A stretch of DNA of 64,000 nt from Blastocystis sp. Blastoise (lineage: Eukaryota > Protista > Bigyra: Opalinata): contig JBBPEB010000005.1 in assembly GCA_039096225.1 (NCBI GenBank), positions 186,001 through 250,000 of the forward strand, given 5' to 3'. Every line of letters begins with the position of its first letter. The first letter of the stretch is position 1. Below the pieces are notes generated by a model. That model saw nothing but the letters and a program-made list of their open reading frames with translations, was not told the DNA's origin and did no database searches. Positions 3,024 to 56,600 of this stretch are shown piece by piece. Position numbers and translations under genes: made by a program.

Positions 3024-5918
3024 CTAAGAAAAAATATCTGAAAAGTCAGCAGAACTTGAAAAACCTGGTTGAGAAGCAAAAATAGCATGACTCTTATGAC
3101 GGCGTTTTGAAATCTTAGGAATTCTATATATATATATATATATATATATATAAAAGAGAAAAGAGAAAAATATAAAAATGTAAAAAAAAATAAATAAATA
3201 AATAATATAATATAAAATAAAAACTATATATACTCTTCACTTAATTGAATATGTTCTTCTTCAATAGTTTCAGGTATATTATTATCAATATCATAATTTC
3301 CTGGTTTAACAATAGTGGGAAGAGATCTTAAAGGAACATTAAATGAATGTCTTTCTGTATATCCATTAAGAGAATTAAATAAAGATAAACTACCGTTATC
3401 TGTATCATTATTACTATCTAATCCACTACAACTACTGTCACTAAATATAGTACTTAGATTCTGTTCACAATTACTTTCAAATACATCCATGGAATCTAAA
3501 GAAGTATCAAATATATTATTATATTGAAAAGAAGGTAATAAGCCAGGTGCACTTTGAAATGAATTCTTATCTACAGATTTATGTTTTACTTTAGTATTTG
3601 TTAATGAATCATAGAAATAAGAAGAGGTACTAGTAGTATTAGTAATAGTATTATTATTATTATTAGTAATAGTATTATTACTAGTAGTAGGAATAGGAGA
3701 TAGAGAAGAAAGCTGAATATCCATTGGTTGTATATTATTATTATTAGTAGTAGTAGTAGTAACATTATTATTATTAGTAACATTACTATTATTATTATTA
3801 TTATTACTATTATTATTAATAGAATCATTTATAGCTATAGAAGAAGGAATAGGTAGTGGAGATAAAGAGGAAGGAATAGTCGCGGAAATATCATTATTAT
3901 CTAGAGTCTTATTAAGATTCGTCAATGTATTGGATGACAGAGGCAGCGTCATAGGTTTACTTAATAATACAGGCTCCGTGAGACGTTGAGAACGAATATC
4001 TGGAGATACCATATCATAAGATATAGGAGGACTTAAAGAATTCTATATATATATAGTATTTAACAAATATATAGATAAAATAAATATAAAAATAATATAT
4101 AATATTTAATATATATAGATAAAACAAATAAATATATATATATATACATTTGCATAAAGAGGTTCAGAGGACATCGATGTATAATGATTCTTGTTATTCC
4201 CGCGGTTATTATGGTCAATATTAAGAATAGGAGATGTAGTATATAGATTTGGTTTTGGCGATATATATAGGGTATCTATGGGATGTGGCGACATAAATGA
4301 ATCATTTTCTGAATAGGGTGAAAGATGATTTATATGTGAAGGGATGGTAGAGGAGGAATAGAAAGAAGGGGATGTATAATTTGGACGTTGTCGGTAGGGA
4401 TCTCGTATATTTAATGGAGATATATAAGAATCTTCTGATTGATTATAACTATCTTCACTATATAGAGAATGATCTAAAGAAGAATTTGAATATATATAAG
4501 GATCATTTAAAGAATGATGAGGATCCCCGCGGTAATTGGGTTCTTGAGAGAGTGATTTTGAATAATTATATGGAGATTGTTCTTGAAAATGATAATTATT
4601 TATATATCGTTGTGAAGTATTATAAGGATTATTATTCATAGTATTACTATTCATAGTATTCATAGTATTATTATAAGGATTTCTATGTGCATTAGAGGAA
4701 TAATCAGGATTATAAGGATCGATCTGAGAAGTATTATAATAATCATATTGAGTATAGGAGGGAAGATTCATATTTAAAGGTGTATATTCATTATTCGCTG
4801 AATTCTTTTCAGTATCTTTCTGACCAAATGCTCTTTTCACTTCTACCTATATATATATATTATATATTATATATATCATTATAAAATTAATTGTGTGAAT
4901 AATACAAAAAAAAGAGAATATATATAATAATAATAATATATATATATATATATACATTTTTTCCATTAATAATATGAAACGGTTGATTCAGAACAAAGTT
5001 CGCAACATCAAAAGATGCAAATATAACAAATCCAAAACCGCGGTTTTTCTTGGTTTCTGAATCAATGACGATATTACAACTTTCTATAGGACCAAATTGA
5101 GAGAAATATTGTTGAAAATCAGCTAGAGAATTAGATATATATAGAAATAATATAAGTTTATATAGAAGAATAAATATAATATTATATATATATATACCTT
5201 GAGTAGTATTTTGGCTAATTCCACCAATAAACAATTTACGATACACTTGTTTCATTTGTTGTTCATCTATAGAATAACACAAATATATATAACAATAATA
5301 AATAATATTTATATAAACAATAAAAAATAATAAATAATACTTATATATAACAATAATAAATAATATTATATAAACAATAAAAAATAATAAATAATACTTA
5401 TATATAACAATAATAAATAAACAATAACAATAATGAAAAAATATATATACTTGATATTGGTGGAGGAGCCATCTCTTTCGGTAATGCCCATCGAACATCA
5501 ACCTAAATAAATAAATAAAAAATAATAATACTAAAGAAAAAAAACTACAAATTATAAATAACTTAATATACTTTTCTATCATCAATGATATGTTCTTTAA
5601 CATCCATTGCAGCAACAGCATCATTTGAATTCTTAAAAATACAAAATCCAAAACCACGAGAAACATTACGTTCAGTATCTTTCATCACTACAGCCTGTTT
5701 GATAGGACCGTATTTTGAAAAATAGTCTCTCAATGAATCTATATGTATTAAACATTAACTACATAAATTAATGAGATAAATATACCATCTGAAGTTTTAA
5801 ATGAAAGTCCACCAACAAATAGTTTGCTATATAATTTATAAGTAATATAATTAAACAATCATTTATACTCTTTATAGAATTTCATTTGAGAATCTGGAAT
5901 ACTTTTATTTGTAGTCAT
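3024..5918 (-). CDS. Two-RRM RNA-binding protein (Musashi/DAZAP1/hnRNP A1-like) with a long Asn/Ser/Pro-rich C-terminus, multi-exon
   Basis: RRM1 KLFVGGL...SRGFGFC and RRM2 KLFIGGI...NRGFGFVIF...VEVKRA (RNP2/RNP1 motifs). ATG at 5916-5918. Spliced last exon ends in TAG at 3024-3026. Confidence 0.85.
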
Positions 5919-53679: not shown

Positions 53680-56600
53680 ATGGGATCTTCCTTAGGCAAA
53701 GAAATAACAGTAGGAGAAACAAAACTCCGTATAAAAGATTTGTTATATGAAAGAGACAGATGGCATATATACTTATCACAAGATGTATATGATCCAAACA
53801 TTTCATATGATTTACATATTGCTACAATACAAGATGGAGATACTGAGACAGAAACTCTAGTTCTCAGAGATATGGAGATATGGAAACATTTTCCTGTTCA
53901 TTCAAATTTGGCAAAATATATTGACTCATGCATAGTACAAGATGGAAATATTAAACGAGCTATTATTGTCACTGAGCATTATGATGGTGAGTGGATAATT
54001 ATTTCATTTATATATATATTTTTTTAATGTATATATTTTCTTAGATTTATTATATAAATATATAAATCTATCTAGGTGGTAACTTAGAGAATTATGTTCA
54101 GAATTTATATCCCCAACGTTTAAATGAAAAAGCTATTTTAGCAATTATTCGTGATGTTGCTTGTGCAATCACTATTTTACATGAACAGAAACCCTCTGTG
54201 ACTCATCGTGTATTAATTGTATGTATATATCATTCTAAAATACTTTAGTAGTCTAGTGTCATTATAGTATAGCTAATATTTTTGAATTTATTATTGTAAT
54301 ATCTTTATATATATAGCCATCCAATATATTCTTCGATAATAGTGGTGCTTATTATAAATGTAAATTGGCTCCATCTTCATTATTAGGATCAGAATCAATT
54401 GTATTTATGTAATATTATAGTTCTTTTTGTGTTTTTATTATATATCATTTTTTAATATTTTTATTATTTTAATGTTTTTTAATATTTTTAATATTTTAAA
54501 TATTTTAAATATTTTAAATATTTTATAATTGTTATTTTTATGCTTTAAATAACTATATATATATATATAGACTCCTAGTAGTATTGAAGGAATAAGTTCT
54601 TTAGAAAAGGTTATTGATAGAGTTTTAGATCCTGGATATGCTCCTCCTGAATTATATAATATGTATATATATATATAATGAATACCTTATTTAACTTTAT
54701 TACTTGATAATTAATAGAGAATAATTTGAGTATTCATTTTATATTTATTATTAATAATAAATAGGAATCATGATATATATATATAATATTTTTTTTTTAT
54801 TTGTTCATAGATATTTATATATATTTATATAGTTATAAACTTCGTAAAATAACAGATAAAGTAGATATATGGGAATTAGGTATTCTCTCCTATTTCCTTG
54901 CATTCTACACGACTCCCTTCGTAGGGGATAATGGCCTCGTTAAAAGCGACTCTCTCGAAGAGGGACGTATCACTTTTGTTGATGAATACGCGTCACAATT
55001 CTCTATTGAATTCCTCGATTTTATTAAATATATGCTTGTTCCTGATTTTAAAAAGTATTTTTTCTTTTATTTATTATTATTTTTTTTATATTTTTTTTTA
55101 TTATTTTTTTTTATTATTTTTTATTATTTATTTTATTATTATTATTATTATATATATATATAGACGTCCTTCTATTCGTCAGGTTCTTGATAAATTAGCG
55201 ACAATTCCGCGTTTTAAGCCCTCCAAAGAATATTTAGAACTCACTGCTAAACCTGTTAAACCTACTGTATATATATAATAATAATAATAATAATAATAAA
55301 ATAAAATAAAATAATAATGAATCTATATAACTATCGTTGATTTTTATAGCCAATATCCAATAAGAATACAGATAATACAGAACGTGGTACGGATAACAAA
55401 AAGCCACAAGTAAAAGTATATATTGTTATTAATATAATGAACTATATATATTAGTCTATCCTTTATATATAGTATGTATTCTCTATACTATTTTCTATTT
55501 ATCTTTTTATTATTTTTATTTTCTTTATATCTATTTATATATATATATATCTATAGAAGACTCCTCGTGAAGGGAAGTCCCTTAAGGCGAAAGACATTAC
55601 GCCTCCCCTTCCCGATCGAAATGAGTCTTCAACACGTGTTCTATCAAATAAACCCTCTGCTAGTACTCGTAAGAGTAATAAACAAGGGTCTCTCTCTCCT
55701 ATTCCTTCTGTATCTCCTTCTACTCCTACTCCTAAAGAGAATTCAAAAGGAATAACAAAACAAAATACTATCGAAAAGAAAGATACTAAAGAAAAAGAAA
55801 AAGGGAAAACAAAAGAAATAAAGAAAGAAGTCAATCGTAATAGTGCAAAGTTAGTATCTCCCGCGGGAAAGAATTCCATAAAGAATCAAAATGGAAAGGT
55901 TTCTCCGACAACAACTTCGACACCTAGTAAGATAGAGAAGAAGAAAGAGAAAGAAGTAGTTGAAGAAATAGAAGAAGAAGAGAATGATTATGAGAGTAAT
56001 GAAGATGCTTCTAGTGATGGTACTTCTCTAAGTGATATGGAAGATGAATATGCAAATGGAATTAAACGAGAAAAAGGAGAAACAATGGATATTTTAAAAG
56101 CAAAAATGTTACATTATTTTGGTGGTAAACATAATTATGGTCGTTGGGTATTTAAGTGTACATCGAAAGTTCCAGAACCTCCTCACATGAATTACTTAAG
56201 AAAAATCATTCTTGAAGCATGGGAAACAAAATCTATTGATTTCTTCTATAAAGAACTTCAAAAGTATACTATTATTTTTGATTTATTTAATTTAGTCTAT
56301 ATATATATATATTCCGTTTTATAGAATACTTGTTTTTTAATAATTATTTTTTTTTGTCATAATTGCTTTTTTAAATAGAATTTTCTTACTATATTTATAT
56401 ATTTTATTTATTATTCTTTAGGCGTCCGTTATTAACAAGTGAAATAGTCGCTGTAAAGGCGTTAACTGCCGTTTTAAGAATACACCAATTAGGTAGTCAA
56501 GATATATTAGAAGGAAGTATTGAAAATATACATATATTTGAAGAAATGAATAAGAAATGGGGTATTATTGAGGTATATATAAGATTATTATTATGATGAT

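Follow-up and report, generated by a model that had tools for sequence, protein, structure and literature searches.

An iterated 14-bp CCGCGG palindrome in the exons of an AT-rich Blastocystis genome, possibly the site of a dimeric DNA-binding protein

Introduction

How does a palindrome composed only of G and C come to be repeated throughout the exons of an extremely AT-rich genome? The question is raised by a stretch of 64,000 nucleotides from Blastocystis sp. Blastoise (assembly GCA_039096225.1, contig JBBPEB010000005.1, positions 186,001 to 250,000 of the forward strand), referred to here as the window. A preliminary description made from the sequence alone had listed 14 copies of the hexamer CCGCGG in this window, nine of them extended to the octamer CCCGCGGG, and had likened them to HIP1, the highly iterated palindrome of cyanobacteria. 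The iterated CCGCGG was confirmed to be real and to hold across the genome, where it forms the core of a longer, symmetric site.

Blastoise is equated with strain Rus-B, whose source was a Russian tortoise, and the Rus-B genome comprises 33.3 Mb with 23.1% GC and 8,547 genes (PMC10690189). Nanopore, Illumina and RNA data, two sister isolates and cultures exist for this organism, so the questions raised by the motif are directly testable (PMC10690189). The genome paper contains no word beginning with 'palindrom' or 'methyl' (PMC10690189). Approximately 39% of the words of window positions 26500-31000 were contained in two sequencing runs, one of which is a gut polyA metatranscriptome.

Abundance of CCGCGG in the window and the genome

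Counts in the window, which has a G+C content of 24%, were compared with dinucleotide-preserving shuffles, and genome-wide counts were compared with those of the same pattern read backwards. CCGCGG occurred 14 times in the window against 0.08 expected, and CCCGCGGG nine times against 0.00 expected, which agrees with the earlier estimate that the octamer should occur far less than once per window; every position listed for the two words was matched exactly. CCCGCGGG was by far the most over-represented octamer of the window, and no other all-GC hexamer was prominent. The enrichment was not confined to the window. Genome-wide there were 2367 copies of CCGCGG (197 for the reversed control), 742 of CCCGCGGG, 303 of the 10-mer TCCCGCGGGA and 56 of the 14-mer ATTCCCGCGGGAAT, the reversed control being 0 for each of the three longer forms. 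The density of CCGCGG is approximately 1 per 14 kb overall and 1 per 4.4 kb of coding DNA.

The influence of protein sequence and codon usage was addressed with a null in which synonymous codons were shuffled without altering any protein or the pooled usage of codons; the open stretches used, 132 kb in total, came from the window and from positions 120001-320000 of contig C2. The null gave 0.66 ± 0.73 hexamers and 0.07 octamers, compared with 30 and 16 observed, and seven other all-GC palindromic hexamers that were tested agreed with it. Protein sequence alone is therefore insufficient to account for the copies, as had been argued in the preliminary description, and since codon usage also leaves the excess unexplained, a force acting on DNA rather than on protein is required. 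Over-representation across the genome, under a composition-aware and a codon-aware null alike, is a property expected of a HIP1-like element.

Coding context and effect on proteins

Each of the 14 sites of the window was inside a stretch free of stop codons (195 to 5496 nt long), and both coding strands and all three phases were represented. Stop-free runs would average a few tens of nucleotides in such AT-rich DNA, hence the sites are exonic, as first proposed. Among 39 sampled sites 38 were within open stretches that measured 195 nt or more, with 6, 16 and 16 sites in phases 0, 1 and 2, respectively, giving the coding position in all frames that is also expected of a HIP1-like element; these sites were evenly distributed along the exons. 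Depending on the phase, the motif was read as CCC GCG GGA (Pro-Ala-Gly), as xxC CGC GGx (x-Arg-Gly) or as CCG CGG (Pro-Arg). These readings employ codons that are otherwise avoided, CGC and CGG accounting for 3.8% and 1.8% of Arg codons, GCG for 7% of Ala codons, GGG for 6.2% of Gly codons, and CCC and CCG for 8.9% and 3.1% of Pro codons.

The first three sites of the window are hexamers on the minus coding strand, at 4200-4205 (context attcCCGCGGttat, with mixed half-sites; AAC CGC GGG, Asn-Arg-Gly), 4527-4532 (context atccCCGCGGtaat; TAC CGC GGG, Tyr-Arg-Gly) and 5038-5043 (context aaaaCCGCGGtttt), the last of which reads AAC CGC GGT on the conserved Arg-Gly of the RNP1 motif (NRGFGFV) of an RRM protein. 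On the plus coding strand the octamer was found at 18359-18366, where it is part of TCCCGCGGGA and reads CCC GCG GGA (Pro-Ala-Gly) within a 1762-aa He_PIG open frame, at 20999-21006 (L-P-A-G-F) and, again as part of TCCCGCGGGA, at 55860-55867 (S-P-A-G-K). On the minus coding strand it was found at 27190-27197 (L-P-A-G-M, in a He_PIG exon), at 27422-27429 (within TCCCGCGGGA; CCG CGG GAA, Pro-Arg-Glu) and at 30554-30561 (within TCCCGCGGGA; Pro-Ala-Gly), with a further hexamer at 29541-29546 (context ataaaCCGCGGggaa; CCC CGC GGT, L-P-R-G-L). The remaining four sites belong to a transposon and are described below. The L-P-x-G context of the He_PIG-type proteins contains the motif in two different frames, giving L-P-A-G at 20999 and 27190 and L-P-R-G at 29541.

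Sites were found without a gap on the conserved Arg-Gly of RNP1 and on the peroxiredoxin sequence FRGLF, and this gapless position over conserved residues indicates that the motif was written in place by substitution. Origin by insertion of a small mobile palindrome was excluded by the same gapless overlaps together with that at L-P-x-G. The effect on protein sequence was considerable, in that Pro-Ala-Gly was observed 14 times against 1.5 expected, an approximately ninefold excess, and the reverse tripeptide Gly-Ala-Pro 3 times. Nine of the 14 were encoded as CCCGCGGG(A/G). The tripeptides Pro-Thr-Gly, Pro-Met-Gly and Pro-Lys-Gly included CCC-ACG-GGA, CCC-ATG-GGA and CCC-AAG-GGA, in which the middle residue varies and the rare CCC codon and the GGA codon are retained. 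A ninefold shift in a tripeptide is relevant to the influence that forces at the level of DNA have on proteins where a genome is extremely rich in AT.

The RRM-protein gene (window 3950-5300, minus strand) has introns of 80-110 nt that start with GTATATATAT, end with TATATAG and consist largely of (TA)n; TATATATA occurred 740 times in the window. Very large single-exon proteins with many He_PIG (putative Ig) and hormone-receptor (HRM) domains are encoded at window positions 16565-21853 and 10-1008, and a third He_PIG and HRM single-exon region lies at 846-9998 of another stretch.

Structure of the extended site

The site was found to extend to a 14-bp consensus, ATTCCC-NN-GGGAAT, with ATAACCG and ATCCCCG as alternative half-sites and with symmetric flanks (ATTC, ATCC or ATAA on the left, GAAT, GGAT or TTAT on the right). 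Representative forms are ATTCCCGCGGGAAT and TAACCGCGGTTA. The extension is nested, 31% of hexamers being part of the octamer, 41% of octamers part of TCCCGCGGGA and approximately 18% of TCCCGCGGGA copies part of the 14-mer. CCGTGG and CCACGG are flanked in the same way as CCGCGG and so belong to the same family; in the window, family members with a changed centre are present at 19230-19235 (attcCCACGGgatt), 19512-19517 (caacCCACGGgaat), 27508-27513 (attcCCGTGGttat), 28490-28495 (tttcCCACGGttat) and 58338-58343 (cttcCCACGGgaat).

The pattern TCCCNNGGGA occurred 975 times genome-wide, compared with 9 for the reversed control. Its centre was GC in 303 copies, GT or AC in 426 (204 + 222) and AT in 99; of the remaining 147, those that fell within the first 50 sites listed all had AA or TT, and pyrimidine-purine centres were absent from these 50. 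The single-change variant TCCCGTGGGA and its reverse complement (426 against 2 for the controls) outnumbered the 303 intact 10-mers. The C-to-T variants of the half-site were very different in abundance, TCCTGCGGGA and its complement giving 2 + 7 = 9 copies genome-wide and TCTCGCGGGA and its complement 8 + 9 = 17, so that the inner C-to-T transition was 25 to 47 times commoner than the other two. In the Pro-Ala-Gly frame these half-site changes would be synonymous and directed towards preferred codons. The 246 10-mers with a doubly changed centre (AT, AA or TT) had perfect half-sites, and the full 14-mer was present at 32% of sites with a weakened centre compared with 18.5% of sites with an intact centre (Fisher p = 4e-5). 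The two central bases are barely constrained, and run down from GC through GT or AC to AT or AA/TT.

Such a series of centres might be read as the remains of an ancestral set of sites, produced by an old burst or inherited from a GC-richer genome and now decaying neutrally. The sites do predate their capture by a transposon, and in GC-rich Blastocystis contigs CCGCGG is present at approximately 0.34 per kb, about the chance level for that composition. Neutral decay would, however, erode flanks, half-sites and centre together, whereas variants of the centre outnumber those of the half-sites 25- to 47-fold, the sites with decayed centres have the better flanks, and the rare CCC and GGG codons persist beside centres that have changed twice. 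It may also be reckoned that the ancestor would have needed approximately 10 times more Pro-Ala-Gly than is seen to leave nine encoded as CCCGCGGG. A decaying relic is therefore a very unlikely explanation. Better flanks at weakened centres are instead the prediction of a binding-energy threshold, the opposite of joint neutral decay. A constrained binding site fits the data better, since the half-sites are fixed where changes would be synonymous and favoured, the doubly changed centres keep their half-sites and the flanks compensate for the centre. Such a profile of constraint is what dimer sites typically show when the protein makes no contact with the centre.

The half-sites were also found to combine freely. 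The combination TTC..GAA was present 113 times and TAA..TTA 58 times, with 236 mixed sites compared with 162 mixed sites under independence. Mixed half-sites above independence indicate that the two arms need not be complementary and that no hairpin is needed. An element acting in RNA or single-stranded DNA, such as a hairpin, a splicing enhancer or a translation pause, would account for exonic sites with rare codons, but is at odds with this excess of mixed half-sites and with the coding strands of the variant sites, which were split 15 to 16 without bias. The same two observations bear on the suggestion in the preliminary description that the motif is a chromatin or splicing factor site: a chromatin factor is a good candidate, while the splicing factor was not supported. 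Taken together with the artefact considered below, an RNA-level or single-strand element is judged extremely improbable.

Search for methylation and repair systems

The excess of inner C-to-T transitions raises the possibility that the inner C of CCGCGG is modified and hence hypermutable, optionally with a linked repair or conversion bias that renews the motif in the manner of HIP1 or Dcm/Vsr; a methylation and repair drive was among the mechanisms proposed in the preliminary description. Several results are in its favour. Transitions of the inner C are 25 to 47 times commoner than those of the outer CpG C or of a non-CpG C, which a position-specific methylase can explain and general CpG methylation cannot. 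The proportions of GC, GT/AC and AT centres (303 : 426 : 99) are near a two-hit binomial with p = 0.38, and one transposon subfamily has inherited a CCGCGG to CCGTGG change.

The genome was searched for the corresponding enzymes with profiles in six frames, exon by exon, an approach restricted to single exons by which absence is not proven. A single match to PF00145 was obtained, a gene of at least 3 exons at positions 406469-408340 of contig C34 encoding a DNMT2-type tRNA methyltransferase, whose best solved relatives are human DNMT2 and tRNA (cytosine38-C5)-methyltransferases (E = 3e-36). The same searches gave no match to N6_N4_Mtase (PF01555), Vsr (PF03852), SAD_SRA or the Eco29kI-type nuclease (PF09517), other families of CCGCGG nucleases lying outside the set searched. 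CpG was mildly depleted (observed/expected 0.70-0.76) and TpG/CpA was at 0.97-0.99. In the profile searches and dinucleotide ratios there was consequently neither a DNMT1/3/5-type enzyme, nor an SRA reader, nor the TpG/CpA excess of a eukaryotic 5-methylcytosine system. A search for bacterial-type C5/N4 methyltransferases or DNMT5 had been proposed as a check, and DNMT2 was the only C5 methyltransferase found. A Vsr-like drive should moreover deplete CCGTGG, but this variant is in excess with family flanks (426 against 2). The retention of intact half-sites at 246 doubly changed centres is unexpected under hypermutability in the absence of continued constraint, and hypermutability leaves the creation of the motif unexplained. 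A modified inner C is for these reasons considered an unlikely source of the pattern.

Distribution among genes and transposon copies

Across the window and 200 kb of contig C2 the density of sites was over-dispersed between regions. Positions 130-150 kb and 160-190 kb of contig C2, which contain ordinary host genes (legumain, Vps35, fucose pyrophosphorylase), had one family site only, and the surroundings of an SGT1-like gene had ten family sites in 6 kb. The legumain, Vps35 and fucose pyrophosphorylase genes are without CCGCGG, so that the earlier proposal that the motif marks resident host genes was too broad. Local GC was not higher where sites cluster.

Regional differences of this kind would be predicted by a functionless molecular drive, in which biased gene conversion or mismatch correction favours the strand with the motif and the reader serves the drive and not the cell, analogous to DNA uptake sequences (DUS). 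Sites at arbitrary exon positions in all frames and the alteration of amino acids are also compatible with drive, and the composition of non-coding DNA (approximately 15-20% GC), which provides few near-cognate sequences, would explain why the sites are restricted to exons. Set against this are the lack of a candidate enzyme among those searched for and the unraised GC at site clusters, and drive is not distinguishable from weak selection with these data. As a purely functionless process it is given a low probability.

The four remaining sites of the window are located in the cargo of a hAT transposon of approximately 18 kb (window 32708-51111), which has ends beginning CAGGG and an 8-bp target duplication, TCTGCTAG. 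This duplication is unrelated to the motif, and the hAT target site was rejected as its source. At least 17 copies of the first 4 kb of the cargo (34611-38685), with 97-99% identity, are scattered over many contigs, and older copies exist with 85-94% identity. The octamer at 36739-36746, in a captured gene fragment, was intact in all 8 copies read, and the hexamer at 37885-37890 and the octamer at 37946-37953 were intact in every copy read. The octamer at 37099-37106 was replaced by CCGTGG in the 7 other copies read. The placement of four copies in the captured fragment (36740-37952) was thereby borne out, and no CCGCGG is present between 37953 and 55860. A more distant copy at positions 227758-229511 of contig C3 (85-88% identity) has octamers at approximately matching places, including CCCGCGGG near the equivalent of 37099, as mapped by coordinates only. 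Contig C3 is also where the parent gene is likely to lie.

The CCGTGG of the 7 copies follows the orientation of the element and not the strand of the genome, and is linked to a second nearby substitution. Taken with the C3 copy, these observations indicate a real, inherited C-to-T change. This bears on the possibility that the motif is an artefact of base-calling or assembly, which might be suspected where the assembly begins, as here, from R9 Nanopore reads. Those reads were processed with racon and then polished four times with Illumina reads from PCR-free libraries (PMC10690189), and the reading frame was preserved at every site. Given the polishing, the preserved frames and a transposon variant that follows descent rather than strand, an artefact is unlikely.

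A putative dimeric reader of double-stranded DNA

The explanation that we tentatively favour, with somewhat less than even confidence, is that the 14-bp sites are read in double-stranded DNA by a putative dimeric protein and that selection or drive preserves them despite AT mutation pressure. It is from the excess, the extended symmetric consensus, the independence of frame, the distortion of proteins, the constraint profile and the free mixing of half-sites that we infer a protein reading the site. A sequence-specific protein with two-fold symmetry would bind through two independent half-sites, and a directional force, which may be selection for binding or a drive behaving like selection, would keep the sites in coding DNA against the strong mutation pressure towards AT. 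To account for the rare codons, and for amino acid changes at positions that tolerate them, this force would have to be strong. The data do not separate selection from a drive of the conversion type.

Several points weigh against such a dimeric reader. Profiles for the COE DNA-binding domain (PF16422), CSL, CG-1 and Zn2Cys6 gave no match in six-frame searches of the exons of the genome, although these are weak negatives, the control genomes being prokaryotic only. The near-exclusive exonic location and even placement of the sites are unusual for a transcription factor, thousands of selected sites imply a heavy load, and many ordinary genes are siteless when one SGT1-like gene has ten sites in 6 kb. 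A flank-dependent, site-specific methylase would yield the same variant spectrum and the same correlation with the flanks. The second half-site, CGGTTAT, is outside the COE consensus, and the motif data come from the genome of one species.

Comparison with relatives and known systems

Outside this genome the nearest RPL3 sequences were at most 74% identical, on contigs of 46-58% GC from human-type Blastocystis and from one yeast-like genome. Approximately 50 kb of human-type Blastocystis contigs had no excess of CCGCGG or TCCCNNGGGA, a weak result from a small and GC-rich sample. In GC-rich human-type contigs TTACCGCGGTT or ATACCGCGGTTA is located approximately 500-660 bp upstream of RPL3, in one case between divergent genes; the word is similar in sequence to the TAACCG half-site and is a possible conserved promoter element. 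The Blastoise genome contains two RPL3 paralogues, on contig C2 and on a 1.74-Mb contig; the proteins listed in GenBank have 401 and 304 aa and cluster together at 90% identity. One RPL3 match came from a compact, apparently intron-poor gut-metagenome genome of 53-56% GC, which is yeast-like and not a Blastocystis relative.

The core hexamer CCGCGG is the SacII site, and restriction systems usually cause avoidance of their sites. In common with SacII, Eco29kI and Dcm/Vsr systems the Blastocystis family has this hexamer and one defined hot cytosine, as expected of a bacterial methylase; in contrast to them, nuclease, methylase and Vsr genes were not found in the genome searches, the site is in excess, and the T variant that Vsr would deplete is in excess too. 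The Pdr1/Pdr3 element PDRE, TCCGCGGA, is an example of the everted CGG repeats of fungal Zn2Cys6 proteins. The likeness is to a dimer-read everted CCG-CGG repeat with no spacer, but the flanking bases are different, the genome searches gave no Zn_clus domain, Blastocystis is a stramenopile and its sites are exonic. E2F-type palindromes have a GGCGCC core, and E2F was rejected as this core occurs only 197 times, approximately twice the expectation.

Closer in sequence is the site of the dimeric COE/EBF/Collier factors, published from in-vitro work as ATTCCCNNGGGAAT (PMC4512700). The main Blastocystis consensus is identical to it letter for letter, and both are palindromes of the dimer type with an unconstrained central NN. 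They differ in that the Blastocystis centres are limited to GC, GT/AC, AT and AA/TT, in the second half-site CGGTTAT, and in location, the thousands of Blastocystis sites being exonic and evenly spread rather than in regulatory non-coding DNA. The COE DNA-binding domain (PF16422) was also without a match in the genome, a weak negative as the controls were unable to match. To our knowledge COE factors have been described only from animals.

The uptake sequences of Neisseria and Pasteurellaceae (DUS and uptake signal sequences, USS) are 9-12-mers present in thousands of copies (PMC2346458). These and Chi resemble the Blastocystis sites in being intragenic in all frames, in being spread or kept by a process at the level of DNA, and in distorting coding sequence, but they are bacterial, non-palindromic, biased in orientation and tied to transformation or RecBCD. 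We know of no transformation- or RecBCD-like process in Blastocystis.

In cyanobacteria the highly iterated palindrome HIP1 (GCGATCGC) is accompanied by orphan DNA methyltransferases that are cognate to it (PMC4390886, PMC5861425). The comparison made in the preliminary description fits as description, as each is a short, hyper-abundant palindrome of coding DNA, present in all frames, beyond what codon usage explains and attributable to selection or drive. HIP1, however, is prokaryotic and has its methyltransferases, whereas only DNMT2 was found in the eukaryotic Blastoise genome. With its 14 bp the Blastocystis site also exceeds HIP1 in length, and it differs in its two forms of half-site, its loose centre and its lower density. 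The literature searched yielded neither a description of the CCGCGG family nor any nuclear HIP-like element in a eukaryote, in keeping with the earlier statement that no such system was known. Oligonucleotides that are iterated genome-wide and override codon usage are known from bacteria as HIP1, DUS/USS and Chi, where they have been informative on methylation, DNA uptake and recombination. We consider it possible, but hold it more loosely than an even chance would warrant, that tortoise-lineage Blastocystis has a eukaryotic counterpart of these systems, in which a putative dimeric protein would read some 7,000-8,000 COE-like 14-bp palindromes (extrapolated as 975 x 2367/303), approximately 1 per gene, as an exonic gene-body landmark for chromatin, replication origins or recombination, or as a self-propagating conversion drive, rewriting codons and amino acids across the proteome.

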